From Oopsacas minuta (taxonomy: Eukaryota > Animalia > Porifera): DNA of 64,000 bases. Position numbers and translations under genes: made by a program. The notes beneath the pieces were generated by a model. The model was given only the letters and a program-made list of their open reading frames with translations. It did not search any database and was not told where the DNA came from. The stretch is from positions 248,001 to 312,000 of the forward strand of contig JAKMXF010000166.1 of assembly GCA_024704765.1 (NCBI GenBank). The letters run 5' to 3'. Of this stretch, positions 17,671-57,750 are shown piece after piece (position 1 is the stretch's first letter; every line of letters begins with the position of its first letter).

Positions 17671-19039
17671 TACCGGGTGTTTCAAAAAAAACAGGCCCCA
17701 AAATCATGGAGCCATATTTCAGACGATTCTATGTATTCAGATATACCATTGATAACTAGTATAAATATACTACTTTTTAACAATATAACTAAGGGAAAAG
17801 GTTGAAATTACTGAAATACCCAACTTATAGCATATGTTCTAGGTGCCCGCCATTAACTTCCATGCATTTTCTTAGTCTTTTCACAAATTCTTCATTACAT
17901 CCATGCACACTGACTTTGGAATCTTTCCCATTTCATCCTTAATGGATATTTTTAGTTCTCTGATGCTCTAGGGTTTGTTAGCATATACTTTATCCTTCAA
18001 ATAGCCCCAAAGATAGAAATCAGGGGGGCTCAGGTCCGGGCTATGAGGGGCCCACTCAAAGGGGTCAGTCGACTGATGATTCTGGTTCCAAAGTGGTTTT
18101 TAAGCCATTCCCTAGCAATTAATGAGGTATGGGCAGGGGCTCCATCTTGCTGGAACCATAATTTGGGTAGTAGAGAGGGGTAGAGTGATTCCACTTCTTT
18201 CCAGAACTCATTAAGCACCTTGACGTAGCGTTCCTTTGTCACAGTCACATTTCGACCATTTTCTTCGATGAAAATAGGTCCAATGATGCCTCTCGCCCCA
18301 ATAGCAGCCCACACGGTGCATCTTTCGGAATGTAATGGCTTCTGAACTATCTCTGAAGGCTTCTGAGTACCCCAAAATACATTGTTCTTACTATTGACCC
18401 GCCCATCCAGCTCAAAATGAGCCTCATCCGAGGTGAAATGAAGCCCAAGGAATGAGTCACAACTTTCAACTTTGGCGACCAATTTCTCAGTCATAGCTAC
18501 CCTCTTGACCTTATCTACATTTGATAGCTTCTGGCCAGTTTGTATTCTATAGGGGAAAAAGGACAAATCTTGTTTCAAGACTCTCCAGAGGGTGGTAGGG
18601 GTGACACCAAGAGACTAGCTCCTCTTCCGGATTGACCTTTTTGGGCTGTTTCCAACTGCCTCCCTGACATCATCAATAACCTCCGCAGTTCTCTTCCTAG
18701 GTCTCCCAGAATGAGTTGGACGCTTGGAATCCTTTGTAATTAGGTTTAGCACGGTCCCATATGCCCTAAAATGGCTAACCCAGGATTGAATCACACTCTT
18801 ACAGGGCGAGGAAGCTGCCTCTAACTTTGCATGAAATAACTCATTGACCGTCTAAACGACCCATGTTTGAAGTAGAATTCGACACAGAATATGCGGTGTT
18901 CCAACTTCCAATTTGGCATGGATGTATTCACAGGAGTTGTTTCTGCCATATAGTGAAGAGAAAATATTGCTATAATAGAATACCTGTACATAGAGAGAAA
19001 AAGATGTAACTGGGGCCTAATTTTTTGAAACACCCGGTA
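17671..19039 (-). mobile_element. Full-length (~1365 bp) IS630-Tc1-mariner DNA transposon, DD41D (rosa/Visitor) type, with TA target duplication
   Basis: TIRs TA-CCGGGTGTTTCAAAAAA..GGCCCCA at both ends; transposase with FTSDEAHF, WFQQDGAPAH, W-A-P-H-SPDLSPPDFYLWG; 41 residues between second and third Asp after repairing a 1-bp deletion. Confidence 0.92.
17825..18949 (-). pseudogene. Inactivated DD41D transposase
   Basis: Frameshift near 18850, in-frame TAG near 18616 (KRSIRKRS*SLG), 1-bp deletion near 18058; C-terminus ends CMEVNGGHLEHML*. Confidence 0.9.
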
Positions 19040-20510: not shown

Positions 20511-20807
20511 TTAGTAATATTCGCTATTTAACAACAAACAACACTCTTTATACATTTTCAATTCTTCTATTTCTGCTTGAATTGTTTGAAATTCCAATTT
20601 TAGCTCATCTCGTACCTTCTGTAAACTTCCGTAATTTGATTGCCTTTCTTGATATCGATGTTTCCCTGATTTTTGCAAAAGTCTTTTCCTGCGATAATTT
20701 TTAACCTCAGTAACTTCTTCTTTAGAAGCATTATTCTTTTCTAATAATCTGTTTAACTCGGGTATTGTTGAGTATACGATATCCTCTTCTGTTAGATAAT
20801 ATGCCAT
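20511..20807 (-). CDS. Small Maf-like bZIP protein with degenerate basic region
   Basis: LTEEDIVYSTIPELNRLL..SKEEVTEVKNYRR matches the Maf extended homology region; four-heptad zipper L-L-I-L; basic region diverged. Confidence 0.75.
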   Translation of the reverse strand: MAYYLTEEDIVYSTIPELNRLLEKNNASKEEVTEVKNYRRKRLLQKSGKHRYQERQSNYGSLQKVRDELKLEFQTIQAEIEELKMYKECCLLLNSEYY

Positions 20808-22372
20808 TCTTTATTAAATATATTTTCATTATTCTTACACTCATTTATATACATTATTACAGTAGATTTTGCATATCAAATAACTTACGTATCCAATAAT
20901 ATATCCTAATGGCTTATCTATTTACTCTATGTTTACTAGATGCATGTTACGTAATCAATTGCAGCGAACTACTTGTTCTACCTAAACATTCTGGATGTGG
21001 TTTATGCTTAACATCAAAATTATAATGTCAAGCATTTACAGCCAAAGCTTGTACTTAATTGTATTATGTAAGACTCACTCGTATATCAAGAAATTGATTT
21101 ACTGATCCTAACATGGTATTTATCCTAAGACAATATTTACAACTCAGATGTGCACATTCAATTCTTCAATAAGAGAGTCACCTCAAATCTCAGTACTATC
21201 TTAAAATGGGTCGCCCCAACTCCCTATTTTCTCACGAACCTGCATCTATTTGGTTAGTTTGACATACTTTCCAAGTTTGTAGCTCTTACCAGTTATATAA
21301 TCAAATTTTGGAAAAATCAACAGTACAACTCAAATCCTTCCCCAGTTACCTCTGATTAGCTACAAGAGTCTAAATTATTAAATTAAACAAAAGGCGTTAA
21401 AATATTATTAAACAAAATTCTTTTATTTATAATAGCCAAGAGATACGCCCTTACTACTCTAATTTGTCGTGATTTGTTATCACTAGACGCAAAATGTGAT
21501 TAATATCTCATAATAGTATTTTAAATATTATACTCTACCTTCTGAAAAGTTTAGTTTGAGCCATTTACTACCAATACTATCCAACTCATATTAATCTACC
21601 AATATATTCATATTTATGTTTAGATGGGGTTTCTCAAACTGTGGTACATGTGGTCGTATGATCAAACTTGGCCACAGATATGTTTACGTTATATTGGTCA
21701 AATTGATCCTCTATGGCCATTTTGACCAACCAAAACACTTTGCAAAATAATTAAAATTAAGACGGATTAACAGAGGCATTGGATCCGCTATTTTCTAGTT
21801 TAATCAAATTAATAGTATTTCAGTTTTCATCTTAGTTTATACGCTGTCCCATCATTATTTTCAACAATTACCATTACTCAATGAATTGCCGATGTAGACT
21901 TTTTTTCTCAATATTAAGAAAAACTTCTTACACTGCAAATTTGTGAGTTTTCTGATTGCAATGCTATCTAGCTGGGCGGCGTAATGAATTATATGTTTAT
22001 GAATGTATTTGTTTATTTGATTAGTTAATGGTCTCATTTATAATTAGCATCAACGTTAGCAATTGTCAGAGTTTGAACATAAGTAGACTAGAGTTCATAA
22101 TACTTTATACTAAAATTGGTAATTATTTGATTAATTGTAATTATCAATGAAATGACAGTTACAATGTAAATCACGTGGTTTAGTGATTTATCCTTTCAGG
22201 CTAATTCAGTGTTTTATCTATCCTAGGCACAGTACTAATTACCATTCTGTGTTGGTAAGAATCGATTCAGATTTCAGATTATATTTAATAACTCATACTG
22301 CATAACAATAATCTACAGTTACAATCCAGAACACACAACATACAAGAATGTAAAGCTAGTAGTAGTTTGGGT

Positions 22373-22576
22373 CTAAGCAGAAGCAGCCTTGAAGAGAACT
22401 TGCTTCTTAACTTCTTCAAATTCAAAGTCATCATAGTTTGATAGATGCAGATGTAGAAATGACATACTAGCTAACATCCCCAATGCTCCCTTAGAGCTCG
22501 CATAGATCATCTTCTCTCTCACTCCACATCCTTCTGGATTACTATAATACACAGAATAATAAATACGTACACAGTA

Positions 22577-22625
<49 letters not shown>

Positions 22626-23088
22626 GATAATGTGAGAATTATTATGTAAATGTGTATATACTTACAAATGGAAGAGTACCATCTTGTCGACAACTCTCCC
22701 TTTCTTCTCACAGACTAGATTAGTGAATATGTATCGAGGTTCATTCCTGCCTCTAGTGACATCTGCTTCCTTCAGAATATCCACTACCTTTGCAAAGAGA
22801 CTACCAGTTCTCTTTTCAGCTGTTTCATGAGTATCTTTCAGATCTACAATCAGTTCTCTATCTTCTATGAGAGTCTCTACACAGATACACGTCTGTTCTT
22901 TGATGTAGAAGATTACAGCTCTTGCTGTTCGCTTGTTAACTCTATTCATTGCTTCTATGCATTCTGATGTAACTTCAATACCTGTTATGCTTGCTCTACT
23001 CTATTCAATTAGAGAGATAGTATAATATACAAATTATTATATGATTATTTAACTCTATAAGTCAGTACCAGTTAATGGAACTTACCAT
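22373..23088 (-). CDS. ADF/cofilin family protein, copy 1; complement(join(22373..22541,22666..23000,23086..23088))
   Basis: Mirror of the + strand copy; 168 aa; RAVIFYI, EPRYIF, MVLFHFNPEGCGVREKMIYASSK. Confidence 0.9.
22577..22625. repeat. (AAT)n microsatellite in cofilin intron 2, left copy
   Basis: About 16 AAT units; explains the spurious poly-Ile ORF. Confidence 0.95.
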
Positions 23089-23240
23089 ATCAGTTATTAT
23101 TCAATTCGGAGTACTGTTTGTTATTTGAAGATTGTTCCAAGAAATATTTTTTACTCATTTCATGTTTCTTCGCATATTTATAGTTTATAAATTTATTTGT
23201 TTAGATGAGGTTGTATCTAATAATAGAATAGAATATATCT

Positions 23241-23383
23241 CCTTATAAGGAGAAATATAAATACTCTTCTTATATTCATCCATTCAATATTATATGGATA
23301 GATTTATCCATATATGGATTGATTCATCAATTGCTATACTAATTTTAGTTGTTACATATCTCAATACGAATTACCATATAAGG
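23241..23383. promoter_or_regulatory. Three perfect CArG boxes (CC[A/T]6GG) upstream of cofilin copy 1
   Basis: CCTTATAAGG 23241-23250, CCATATATGG 23308-23317, CCATATAAGG 23374-23383. Confidence 0.65.
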
Positions 23384-24056
23384 AAATACAGACAGAGGTA
23401 TGATTTAGGGTTAAAATCTGGGTAGGAGGATTTGTAAATGGTGGTGTAGTCGAGATTCTGGGGTTGAATACTGAACACCCTGGAATCAAAGTTATCAGAA
23501 GTTACAACAGGCCGAATTTTTGTGAATTATTATACAATGCAATTAGAATACTTATGGCGCAATATTATCATAAGGAAATGTTAACACTAGCAACTAGTCT
23601 GTACCTTGCAGCATGTTATCTTCAGGATATGAACTAACCTTGCTATAATTAGAAATATAACGAATATACTTGTAATATTTAAAATTCAAACGCAAACAAG
23701 ATTAGTTGCAGGATTGTGGAAACAATGTTCAGACAAAATTCGCGGATATTTCTCAGATTCCTAAAACTGACGTATGTAGTACGGAAATAGCAACATTTTG
23801 TTCCAGACTTATGTTAAATTAGGTCAATTTTGAAGCATCCCTCGAGTAGTGGGAGTAGGGATTTACCATGGATAGTGGGAAAGCAGTGAAACGTAATATC
23901 TGACTACCTATGTAGCAAGTAATGAGGGAAGGATAATTTATAGGAGAATAGGTCAAGGAATTTCCTTCAAATCTAACTGTACCTATGCTGAATTTCAAAC
24001 TATTTGCTAAATATTGTAGCCACAACTAATTGCAATTCAAGCTTATTAAAGTAACA

Positions 24057-24233
24057 TGCAGGTAAACCTCCGAAATGCGGCACTTTTGGGAGCAGCGCTT
24101 GTGCAGGATCTCCGGAAGTTGTCCTCATTTAGCAATAAATTATATGAAGGTCAATCAGGAGAATGGTTTTGTGCCGTATCTCAGAGGGTGTCGTATTTCA
24201 AAGGTGTCGCTCGCTTTTAGAGGTTTACCTGTA
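24057..24233. mobile_element. pogo/Tigger-type MITE in the palindrome spacer
   Basis: CAGGTAAACCTC(CG/TA)AAA inverted ends (24059 and 24231); TA at right flank, TG at left. Confidence 0.7.
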
Positions 24234-24588
24234 GTACGAGAGATACATGATCTAATGGTATTGCAGCAGCCCAGCTCAGCTCGTGTTTATAGCATGTACA
24301 AACCTTAGTCCATAAATAATTCGTCTTTATAATATTCATGATAGAGTATATGAGTATAGTGATACTTTTGTGGACAACCGCCTATATCACCTTATGTGGA
24401 TCTAATAATATTTGTTTGGAAAATTGATTGTTGGGGCCAATTCGGAAGAAACAAAAAAATCAATATACGTATAATCCAAAATAATATATCAAAAATCATG
24501 ATACCCAATATCTATAGTGTAAATAAATCAATTCCTAACATGGTGGAAACATGAGAACGATTATATTATATTAATAGTTTGAATCAAT

Positions 24589-24665
24589 CCATATATGGAT
24601 AAATCTATCCATATAATATTGAATGGATGAATATAAGAAGAGTATTTATATTTCTCCTTATAAGG
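24589..24665. promoter_or_regulatory. Two perfect CArG boxes upstream of cofilin copy 2
   Basis: CCATATATGG 24589-24598, CCTTATAAGG 24656-24665. Confidence 0.65.
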
Positions 24666-24817
24666 AGATATATTCTATTCTATTATTAGATACAACCTCA
24701 TCTAAACAAATAAATTTATAAACTATAAATATGCGAAGAAACATGAAATGAGTAAAAAATATTTCTTGGAACAATCTTCAAATAACAAACAGTACTCCGA
24801 ATTGAATAATAACTGAT

Positions 24818-25280
24818 ATGGTAAGTTCCATTAACTGGTACTGACTTATAGAGTTAAATAATCATATAATAATTTGTATATTATACTATCTCTCTAATTG
24901 AATAGAGTAGAGCAAGCATAACAGGTATTGAAGTTACATCAGAATGCATAGAAGCAATGAATAGAGTTAACAAGCGAACAGCAAGAGCTGTAATCTTCTA
25001 CATCAAAGAACAGACGTGTATCTGTGTAGAGACTCTCATAGAAGATAGAGAACTGATTGTAGATCTGAAAGATACTCATGAAACAGCTGAAAAGAGAACT
25101 GGTAGTCTCTTTGCAAAGGTAGTGGATATTCTGAAGGAAGCAGATGTCACTAGAGGCAGGAATGAACCTCGATACATATTCACTAATCTAGTCTGTGAGA
25201 AGAAAGGGAGAGTTGTCGACAAGATGGTACTCTTCCATTTGTAAGTATATACACATTTACATAATAATTCTCACATTATC

Positions 25281-25329
<49 letters not shown>

Positions 25330-25533
25330 TACTGTGTACGTATTTATTATTCTGTGTATTATAGTAATCCAGAAGGATGTGGAGTGAGAGAGAAGATGAT
25401 CTATGCGAGCTCTAAGGGAGCATTGGGGATGTTAGCTAGTATGTCATTTCTACATCTGCATCTATCAAACTATGATGACTTTGAATTTGAAGAAGTTAAG
25501 AAGCAAGTTCTCTTCAAGGCTGCTTCTGCTTAG
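24818..25533 (+). CDS. ADF/cofilin family protein, copy 2; join(24818..24820,24906..25240,25365..25533)
   Basis: ATG|GTAAGT first coding exon (the ATG-only exon typical of ADF/cofilin genes); acceptor AG 24904-5; second intron 25241-25364 (phase 2); MSRASITGIEVTSECIEAMN...KMIYASSKGAL. Confidence 0.9.
25281..25329. repeat. (ATT)n microsatellite in cofilin intron 2, right copy
   Basis: Same length as left copy. Confidence 0.95.
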
Positions 25534-26189
25534 ACTATTGGATTCATTATTTCTCTATCTTAGATTCTTTATCTGTTGTTTACTAGTCTGGATTGTATTA
25601 ACAATGTATTGTGTTAATCTTTGAAAAATAAACAAATTCCTTTAAACTTTTACGCTCAAACCTTGGGAAGACTGCGGAGCCAAAATGCTCCATTTCTGGA
25701 ATATGCGCTTTTCATTGAGGCACTATAGAATACTAAATATAAGCTAGTATATTTCATCTAATAGCACTACATACATTCAATTTTCTAGTGTACAAGTCAG
25801 TACAAGTTGGAATTTTAGAATTTTATATGGAATTATTTGTTGTAATTAATCATGTGTTGAGTTAATTGATTCGTTTAAATATACCCACTATGCTGACTCC
25901 AGTATTTTTACACTTTTTGAATAACTTAGAAACATACCCTCAACTACTAGATAGTGGTAAACAAGTACGCTGAATCTGAATTTCGCATTTCCGTAAATTC
26001 CGACTAATAGTACTTCAAGGAGCGAAGCGACCAGCCAAGGCTCGTACTTATTAATCAAAGGTATGAATTTGTTAATAACTTAATTGAGCATATTCAGACA
26101 AATATGATGAGTAGAAATATTTAACCTAAAGAGCAAGTAAACAACCAGTAACAGTAACAGTAATTTCTTGGCATCAAAACAATCATCCA

Positions 26190-56295: not shown

Positions 56296-57750
56296 ATGAT
56301 CCCAGTTAGGAATAAAAGTAGATCTGTTGATCTTACAGATTCGCCTTCACATTCAAAAGTATCTAAATATGGTTCGAAAAATGAATCTAAGCCCAAACTT
56401 GCATACCAACATATAAACGAGTATAATGTAGTGATGAAGGAAGACCATAATTATGAAGAATTAAGAAAGACTGTTTACAGTCCTGAGTCGAAAAGATGTC
56501 CCCTCAAACAACCAGACGGGTCTTATGAAGTGATGGAAGGTGAGAAGAATGTAGATATTGAATATGAAGAATTTTCGAAATTGGTTTCTAGTCCTGAGAG
56601 TAAAACAAAATCTCAGGAAAGTAAAACTTTAAAACGAAAACCCGAAATTCCAATAATTTCTACAAAAATTCTAAATATGAATAAAGTAGGTAATAGTGTT
56701 GTAGATAAAAGCACAAAGCTTCCTTTCTCAAAGCAAAAAAGTATGGAAAGTAAACCTGATAAGATTTATGATTCTAAAGGAAATCATTATTACTATTTGG
56801 ATGATTGTGTTAATGTATTTATGTCATCAAGTGCACACCCTGAGCCCAGTCTGAAGATTACTCCTTCCTTACAAAATGGTACAAAATCTCCTAATAGATC
56901 TAACTATCTTGCAATTAGACCATTGAATACAGTTATTGGAAACAAACAACCAACGGACAGACCCTCAATTCATAAGAAATTCACAAAGAGATCTCAAAAC
57001 ATTACTTCTACTCCAGGAAGTGGAATTGGATGCTCAACACCGGAATTAACCACGTGTATGATATTCGAAGATTTCAAAGAAGGTAGTAATTTTTCAGAGG
57101 TTTACAGTCCTGAGTCGAAAAGATGTCCCCCCAAACAACCAGACGAGTATTATAAAGTGATGGAAGGTGAGAAGAATGTAGATATTGAATATGAAGAATT
57201 TTCGAAATTGGTTTCTAGTCCTGAGAGTAAAACAAAATCTCAGGATAGTAAAATTTTAAAACGAAAACCCGAAATTCCAATAATTTCTACAAAAATTCTA
57301 AATATGAATAAAGTAGGTAATAGTGTTGTAGATAAAAGCACAAAGCTTCCTTTCTCAAAGCAAAAAAGTGTGGGAATTAAACCTGATAAGATTTATGATT
57401 CTAAAGGAGATCTTTATTACTGCTTGGATGATTGTGATAATGTATTTATGTCATCAAGTGCACACCCTGAGCCCAGTCTGAAGATTACTCCTTCCTTACA
57501 AAATGGTACAAAATCTCCTAATAGATCTAACTATCTTGCAATTAGACCATTGAATACAGTTATTGGAAACAAACAACCAACGGACAGACCCTCAATTCAT
57601 AAGAAATTCACAAAGAGATCTCAAAACATTACTTCTACTCCAGGAAGTAGAATCAAACCGGAATTAACCAGGGATATGATATTCGAAGATTTCAATGAAG
57701 GTAGTGATTTTTCAAAATTCGCTGCCGAATTAAAACACAGATATAAATAA
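56296..57750 (+). CDS. Orphan Lys/Ser/Pro-rich disordered protein with a 209-aa internal tandem duplication (484 aa)
   Basis: Long ORF; frame preserved across both repeat units. Confidence 0.75.
   Translation: MIPVRNKSRSVDLTDSPSHSKVSKYGSKNESKPKLAYQHINEYNVVMKEDHNYEELRKTVYSPESKRCPLKQPDGSYEVMEGEKNVDIEYEEFSKLVSSPESKTKSQESKTLKRKPEIPIISTKILNMNKVGNSVVDKSTKLPFSKQKSMESKPDKIYDSKGNHYYYLDDCVNVFMSSSAHPEPSLKITPSLQNGTKSPNRSNYLAIRPLNTVIGNKQPTDRPSIHKKFTKRSQNITSTPGSGIGCSTPELTTCMIFEDFKEGSNFSEVYSPESKRCPPKQPDEYYKVMEGEKNVDIEYEEFSKLVSSPESKTKSQDSKILKRKPEIPIISTKILNMNKVGNSVVDKSTKLPFSKQKSVGIKPDKIYDSKGDLYYCLDDCDNVFMSSSAHPEPSLKITPSLQNGTKSPNRSNYLAIRPLNTVIGNKQPTDRPSIHKKFTKRSQNITSTPGSRIKPELTRDMIFEDFNEGSDFSKFAAELKHRYK
56473..57714 (+). 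repeat. Two tandem 627-bp units inside the 56296 ORF
   Basis: GTTTACAGTCCTGAGTCG at 56473 and 57100; CTAAATATG at 56671 and 57298 (offset 627 both times); few substitutions. Confidence 0.95.

Follow-up and report, generated by a model that had tools for sequence, protein, structure and literature searches.

How can two copies of a gene be identical, base for base, between a distal promoter element and a point 2 bp behind the stop codon, with unrelated sequence on every side? This question is raised by a 64-kb stretch of the genome of the glass sponge Oopsacas minuta (assembly of 61,460,524 bases in 365 contigs). The stretch, positions 248001-312000 of contig JAKMXF010000166.1 (C166), is called the window below, and coordinates count from its first letter unless a contig is named. 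In the window, two head-to-head copies of one small gene, coding for a predicted divergent ADF/cofilin, form the arms of a palindrome. Comparisons within the assembly and with proteins of presumed relatives make it likely that the head-to-head duplication is old and that its arms have been kept alike by mutual conversion. An earlier note on this DNA, made from the letters alone, had proposed an old inverted duplication under ongoing conversion, and its proposal is supported here by paired copies in the relatives that cluster by lineage.

Structure of the palindrome

The window was analysed with an inverted-repeat search and with an exact script comparison, and both gave the same two arms. The left arm (22371-23326) carries one complete gene copy on the minus strand and the right arm (24580-25535) carries the other on the plus strand; between the two promoters lies a spacer of 1253 bp (23327-24579) without a credible gene. 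In the inverted-repeat search the arms, of 956 nt each, were 100% complementary and free of gaps, and in the script comparison the reverse complement of the left arm was exactly equal to the right arm, a position x of one copy being mirrored at 47906-x in the other. The absence of any difference over 956 bp places the divergence of the arms below about 0.3% (95% bound). The arm coordinates, the 956-bp size and the 1253-bp distance claimed in the earlier note were exact, and the exact arm alignment for which it had asked was run and gave zero mismatches.

No other inverted repeat of at least 80 nt was detected in the window, and a search of the whole assembly returned two copies of the arm, exactly these. 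The palindrome lies about 270 kb into a 788-kb contig (788,400 bases), and the window contains no N characters, so that no scaffolding gap is nearby. Unique and unrelated sequence is present on all four arm borders and runs for more than 20 kb; the outer flanks are unrelated except for a weak remnant, described below.

The gene model of the right copy, read from the sequence, equals the annotated protein of 168 residues (P0001). Exon 1 (24818-24820) consists of the ATG only and is followed by intron 1 (24821-24905, GT..AG). Exon 2 (24906-25240) comprises 111 codons plus 2 nt, and its translation is 100% identical to P0001. Intron 2 (25241-25364, GT..AG) holds a run of ATT units, and exon 3 (25365-25533), which ends with the TAG stop codon at 25531-25533, matches the PF00241 profile with 24.1 bits on its own. 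Since the arms are identical, the left copy mirrors this model on the minus strand, with the ATG-only exon 1 at 23086-23088, exon 2 at 22666-23000 (open reading frame (ORF) 22662-22949) and exon 3 at 22373-22541 (stop codon 22373-22375; ORF 22373-22711).

The identity ends where it had been placed before, 2 bp past the stop codon, the right arm stopping at 25535. It also covers, as claimed, about 240 bp of promoter and both introns: 238 bp lie upstream of the ATG, and the two GT..AG introns were found inside the arm. The ATT microsatellite of intron 2 (25275-25329, plus strand) was described by Tandem Repeats Finder as 18 units over 55 nt with 96% matches, and a run of equal length was found in the left copy (22577-22631, minus strand) by the inverted-repeat search and the same program. 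The pure ATT/AAT run of 49 nt (about 16 units) does not differ between the arms, in agreement with the equal (ATT)~16 tracts reported earlier. The 956-bp arm is one minimal and self-sufficient gene unit, spanning everything between the distal CArG box and the second base pair after the stop codon. In the annotation the two copies stand next to each other as KAI6655915.1 and KAI6655916.1 and share a single protein sequence, and users of the assembly should be cautious with these two annotated O. minuta genes, which short reads do not distinguish.

Assemblers that work on de Bruijn graphs can merge small differences between near-identical repeats. The O. minuta genome (365 scaffolds, about 61 Mb) was assembled with hybrid SPAdes from Illumina reads and from PacBio reads corrected by Canu, and was then processed with SSPACE, Pilon and GapFiller; the sponges had been sampled in an isolated cave population, for which low heterozygosity is expected (PMC10280926). 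Because of possible merging by the assembler, the "perfect" identity of the arms should be read as at least about 99%. A repeat survey of contig C166 was carried out on a 200-kb sample (20 stretches of 10 kb). In this sample two repeats were kept short of full identity, one inverted (371 bp, 99.46%) and one direct (1194 bp, 99.33%), and the assembler therefore does not force identity. The sample also showed several direct repeats and a palindrome lacking a spacer, and no second gene palindrome was present in it.

The arm gene codes for a predicted divergent ADF/cofilin

For whole-protein searches the database protein P0001 was used as query, the exons were searched singly, and the three coding pieces were joined by script solely for the determination of length and of GC content at third codon positions (GC3). 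P0001, which was retrieved with the exon-2 translation, bears the database name 'Cofilin/actin depolymerizing factor [Oopsacas minuta]'. It matched the Pfam Cofilin_ADF profile (PF00241) with 53.1 bits, the cut-off being 22.4, and its residues 15-159 covered profile positions 1-124 of 125. In the search of solved structures, the 18 best chains were all ADF/cofilin, actophorin or 'actin severing and dynamics regulatory protein', with 2lj8 at the top (E 1e-10). The first chain of GMF (glia maturation factor; 1v6f) came at rank 19 with an E value of 0.018, where more chains of cofilin and destrin also occur, and twinfilin was found at E 0.04. Exons 2 and 3 each matched the same cofilin in collinear fashion. 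As judged from these matches, the protein of 168 residues is a divergent ADF/cofilin, nearer to the ADF/cofilins than to GMF, twinfilin, coactosin or drebrin/Abp1. An identity as GMF was considered and ruled out, since ADF/cofilins were clearly ahead in the solved-structure search.

The N-terminus of P0001 is 3-4 residues longer than usual. In the alignment with 2lj8, the Thr of its I-T-G-I motif stands opposite the Ser of M-S-G-V, at what may be the position of the Ser3-type regulatory phosphosite, and the protein P0003 of a relative reads L-S-G-V at this position.

The best ADF-H match to P0001 in the genome shares 28% identity over 71 residues and is GMF-like by eye. The ADF-H genes noted elsewhere in the genome are a more canonical cofilin at C111:1514635-1516091, a drebrin-like gene, a twinfilin-like double domain (by eye) and a gene at C354:554378-554761 that is GMF-like by eye. 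At C66:590874-596180, a tandem family of longer ADF-H proteins occupies four successive open frames of 423-452 residues, each of which matches the Pfam ADF-H profile from near its own start.

Paired copies on contigs of presumed relatives

A word-based search of a collection of 5.8 billion proteins returned only four clusters of foreign homologues, two with each of exons 2 and 3 as query. The homologues were all encoded on ENA contigs, which were taken to belong to glass-sponge relatives and which are known here from protein translations alone. The exon-2 homologues P0002 and P0005 lie on one contig of 340,697 bases and differ by 3 residues, P0004 and P0006 on a contig of 515,907 bases differ by 4 residues, and P0003 and P0007 on a contig of 765,802 bases differ by 1 residue. 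The exon-3 homologues P0070 and P0072, on a contig of 1,570,907 bases, differ by 2 residues. The earlier note had proposed a comparison with a sister species, in which one copy only would speak against its reading; the comparison was run on proteins of the presumed relatives, and pairs were found on four contigs.

The two members of a contig pair are 96-99% identical, whereas sequences from different lineages, of which exon 2 gave three, are 59-68% identical. The relatives' copies cluster by lineage and not by copy, as is expected from the concerted evolution of an old duplicate. This likeness within pairs, far above that between lineages, is the signature of concerted evolution, and it would support an old duplication more than the 3' remnant does. 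The duplication would be old because the relatives carry pairs too. The exon-2 ORFs of the relatives end with Leu followed by a stop (HL-stop) and that of O. minuta ends likewise (FHL), its last codons TTG TAA being read into the GTAAGT 5' end of the intron; these matching ends point to an intron site common to the relatives and O. minuta.

One lineage is represented by four copies on two contigs. On both of these the paralogues are told apart by sites 65 and 76, whereas site 72 is swapped between them, a failure of the four-gamete test that involves four variable sites only. This failure suggests an exchange of sequence between the paralogues, and recurrent mutation may also account for it.

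The contig of P0070 and P0072 also carries the best foreign match of the MATE gene next to the O. minuta palindrome, which hints modestly at synteny. No wider synteny could be read from this gene, whose family is large and has no match on the three contigs with exon-2 pairs. The flanking MATE transporter itself (PF01554; 26190-27746, minus strand) has O. minuta paralogues of 89%, 76%, 63% and 59% identity and others of 41-43%, and about fifty MATE homologues were seen on the ENA contigs taken as relatives. JGI metagenome contigs were scanned for DNA of the relatives and gave no match.

Sequences beyond the stop codons

The two copies continue into different 3' untranslated regions (UTRs), each with its own poly(A) signal. 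On the left (22284-22372, minus strand) an ATTAAA signal stands 84 nt past the stop codon (22284-22289), and on the right (25534-25632, plus strand) an AATAAA signal stands 94 nt past it (25627-25632). One protein would thereby come under two different 3' UTRs, provided that both are used.

The two 3' flanks share an 11-mer, TCTGGATTGTA, which occurs at 22320-22330 on the minus strand and at 25587-25597 on the plus strand, 40 and 51 nt past the arm ends. It is not a common word, with 59 copies in the 61 Mb of the genome, where the same word reversed, as a control, has 23. When the 100-150 nt next to the arm ends were aligned locally, the score was 27, which was matched by 0.5-0.9% of shuffles and by 0.3-0.9% of random window pairs. 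The earlier note had taken this UTR remnant as favouring an old duplication. The 11-mer is real in both flanks and this part of the claim stands; the significance is marginal and the argument rests better on the pairs in the relatives. The remnant is indicative and suggests common descent of the flanks too weakly to carry the argument alone. On the inner side, no significant homology was detected by alignment of the flanks, save a decayed CArG look-alike at matching distance.

Promoters and spacer

Each arm carries its own set of promoter elements. A putative TATA-like box was read from the sequence 94 nt upstream of the right ATG (24724-24731, plus strand; mirror 23175-23182). A motif scan for CArG boxes (CC-W6-GG) gave two per promoter: on the right, one at the inner edge of the arm (24589-24598) and a second at 24656-24665; on the left, one at the inner edge (23308-23317) and a second at 23241-23250. 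The spacer itself holds a third box (23374-23383) at 48 nt from the left arm, and the decayed look-alike is found beyond the right arm at a distance similar to that of this third box on the left. Five of the eight perfect CArG boxes of the window fall within 23241-24665, the remaining three being elsewhere. One promoter together with the spacer contains 3 boxes vs 0.12 expected (Poisson p about 3e-4). These putative CArG boxes suggest that the cofilin pair may be under control of the SRF/MEF2 type. Factors of the MADS-box family are encoded in the genome at C88:690899 and C111:542115-542782.

The spacer consists of unique sequence, a miniature inverted-repeat transposable element (MITE) of 173 bp and small repeat scraps. 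It had been called unique in the earlier note, which is right for most of its length and wrong for the MITE and the other scraps. The MITE-like element (24059-24231) has terminal inverted repeats of 12 nt (CAGGTAAACCTC) and at least 20 genomic copies with 73-92% identity; the copies stand in unrelated flanks, and most have TA on both sides. A small RNA gene in the spacer was considered and ruled out: Rfam gave no match in the spacer or the MITE stretch, and the copies with terminal inverted repeats, most of them with TA flanks, point to a MITE. No credible gene was found in the spacer, where a lone ORF of 77 residues overlaps the MITE and has no Pfam match, and no transposase ORF was found there. 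A further stretch (23786-23916, spacer positions 460-590) has three more genomic matches of 74-80% identity and is probably an old repeat scrap.

The promoters are two, identical, and face away from a partly transposon-derived spacer. The "shared bidirectional control region" of the earlier note is unsupported by this arrangement, in which each arm has its own TATA-like box and two CArG boxes.

Proposed conversion between the arms and its rivals

Under the reading that we prefer, an old duplication homogenised by conversion, the arms would recombine on the same chromosome, a break in one arm being repaired from the other and the differences being erased. Non-crossover repair would result in gene conversion, and a crossover would invert the spacer. 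The unconstrained flanks, that is the 3' UTRs and the spacer, may have drifted until the extension of heteroduplex failed, and the selected sequence, with the promoter elements at one end and the stop codon at the other, would have stayed similar enough for conversion to continue. The converted tract would in this way have shrunk to the functional gene unit, likely via drift of the flanks. The outcome would be a double dose of one protein, with two identical promoters and two different 3' UTRs.

Several observations weigh against this reading. The evidence consists of assembly sequence and protein comparison. The hybrid SPAdes, Pilon and GapFiller assembly might conceal a few differences between the arms, the length of the microsatellite included. 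The relatives' pairs, seen as proteins only, could be tandem or independently formed, and no paralogue-specific residue is common across the lineages, which fits conversion and independent duplications equally. Aligned globally, the 3' UTRs reach no more than marginal significance (shuffling p 0.054, empirical p 0.011). Finally, the arms are not enriched in GC: their non-coding part contains 23.7% GC, less than the spacer outside the MITE (32.9%) and the flanks (29-31%), and the GC3 of the arm gene, 34.5%, is like that of neighbouring genes. The absence of GC enrichment neither proves nor excludes conversion, since such enrichment is common in primates but is no strict hallmark of converted palindromes.

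The same absence of a GC-bias signature, together with zero differences over 956 bp that include a fast-mutating microsatellite, would also be expected if the inverted duplication had occurred very recently in O. minuta, for instance by replication template switching, had taken in promoter to stop by chance, and had nothing to do with the pairs in the relatives, which would be separate duplications. The marginal flank remnant and the lack of paralogue-specific residues shared across lineages agree with such an event, and close inverted pairs dominate the young duplicates of Caenorhabditis elegans (PMC3194840). It would, however, require that one small gene was duplicated independently, and its duplicates retained, at least three times in lineages that diverged deeply, and that breakpoints fell by chance at the distal promoter element and 2 bp past the stop codon. 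The collinear remnants outside the arms (local p 0.003-0.009 on the outer side, the decayed CArG box on the inner side) would also be left over. In one relative, moreover, the paralogues already differed before its two contigs, haplotypes or species, split, and a mosaic site is seen there. We consider a recent duplication unlikely on these grounds, though it is the most serious competitor of the old, converted pair.

An assembly artefact, in which one real copy or two alleles were turned into a palindrome by the assembler or scaffolder, would explain the exact identity down to the microsatellite length, and a de Bruijn-graph hybrid treated by scaffolding, Pilon and GapFiller is open to this suspicion. 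A misplaced allele would nevertheless bring homologous flanks with it, whereas the flanks are unique and unrelated on four sides over more than 20 kb, the window has no N, and the two copies have distinct 3' UTRs with a poly(A) signal each. The independent assemblies of the relatives also show two copies per contig, and contig C166 leaves repeats of 99.3-99.5% identity unmerged. An artefact is thus very improbable. The contig bears an apparent transposon with inverted ends of 371 bp, and in the palindrome, likewise, the spacer might be the cargo of a mobile element and the arms its long terminal inverted repeats; this reading is rejected because of copy number and content, the arm being present in two genomic copies only and consisting of an ordinary intron-bearing host gene, and the spacer being without a transposase ORF and unique bar the MITE and small scraps. 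It has a negligible chance of being right.

Other features of the window and contig

About 1.5 kb past the 3' end of the left copy, a single-exon ORF of 98 residues (20511-20807, minus strand) resembles a small Maf-like bZIP protein (PF03131, 23.8 bits). By eye, an ORF of 182 residues at 18030-18578 (minus strand) resembles a mariner-type transposase in its C-terminal part; it has no Pfam match. A tandem direct repeat of about 620 bp with 95% identity is present at 56473-57714.

Elsewhere on the contig, a spacer-less palindrome of about 1.1 kb (C166:102854-103949) is 95% self-complementary and has mirrored ORFs of 71 residues. The 371-bp inverted ends at 99.46% belong to C166:80276-83484, where they enclose ORFs of 562 and 250 residues; the whole resembles a DNA transposon of the kind that has long terminal inverted repeats. 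The 1194-bp direct repeat at 99.33% lies at C166:220001-224499, with copy starts about 3.3 kb apart, and it may extend beyond the sampled start.

Implications and comparison with known systems

The cofilin pair would make a small and tidy natural example of concerted evolution, and the relatives seem to share it. Conversion in palindromes is already a known phenomenon, and the cofilin locus alone leaves the knowledge of gene conversion unchanged; our literature search found no paper linking Oopsacas with gene conversion in this sense. If the loci of the relatives are palindromic too, autosomal palindromes of kilobase scale can persist and correct themselves for very long in an early-branching animal, functional constraint can set the limits of a conversion tract, and one protein can come under two different 3' UTRs. 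A much bolder extension, which we put forward tentatively and regard as rather doubtful, is that glass sponges keep a whole class of small genes as kilobase-scale autosomal palindromes, the two arms overwriting one another since before the hexactinellid lineages diverged. If this were true, they would hold a genome-wide miniature of the Y-palindrome strategy with the tract trimmed exactly to the gene unit, and the cofilin pair would be among its cleanest examples.

A perfect inverted duplication of 1.9 kb around a short spacer is known from the hsp-16 locus of C. elegans. For the close inverted duplicates of this nematode (Katju and Lynch 2003), preferential homogenisation is proposed in PMC3194840, where they are discussed. 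The cofilin pair resembles these duplicates in its gene-sized arms, its kilobase-scale spacer, its presumably autosomal location and its near or complete identity. The nematode pairs are mostly read as young, whereas the pairs in diverged relatives argue for the age of the cofilin palindrome.

Palindromes have also been described in Folsomia and in bdelloid rotifers (PMC5490193), and those of the primate Y and X chromosomes are homogenised by arm-to-arm gene conversion (PMC3723533; PMC8981503; the work of Rozen et al. 2003 on primate palindromes as cited in PMC3194840 and PMC5490193). The cofilin palindrome has in common with the primate ones the inverted arms, the unique spacer, the location of genes in the arms and the proposal of intrachromosomal conversion, as well as, if its duplication is as old as proposed, an arm identity far above the expectation from that age. 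It is about 1000 times smaller, with arms of 1 kb instead of tens of kb to Mb, and each arm holds one gene of housekeeping type in place of the primate testis gene families. The primate palindromes are on sex chromosomes, which is not known for the cofilin palindrome, and they show a GC-biased signature (PMC8981503, PMC3723533) of which the cofilin arms have none.

In the extent of the tract, the cofilin pair resembles the human alpha-globin genes. In both systems the tract takes in the promoter together with all exons and introns and breaks off shortly after the stop codon, so that one protein comes under two 3' UTRs. The coding sequences of HBA1 and HBA2 are identical and are kept so by conversion, and their divergence begins in the 3' UTR. 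The two systems differ in orientation, HBA1 and HBA2 being a direct (tandem) repeat and the cofilin pair a palindrome.

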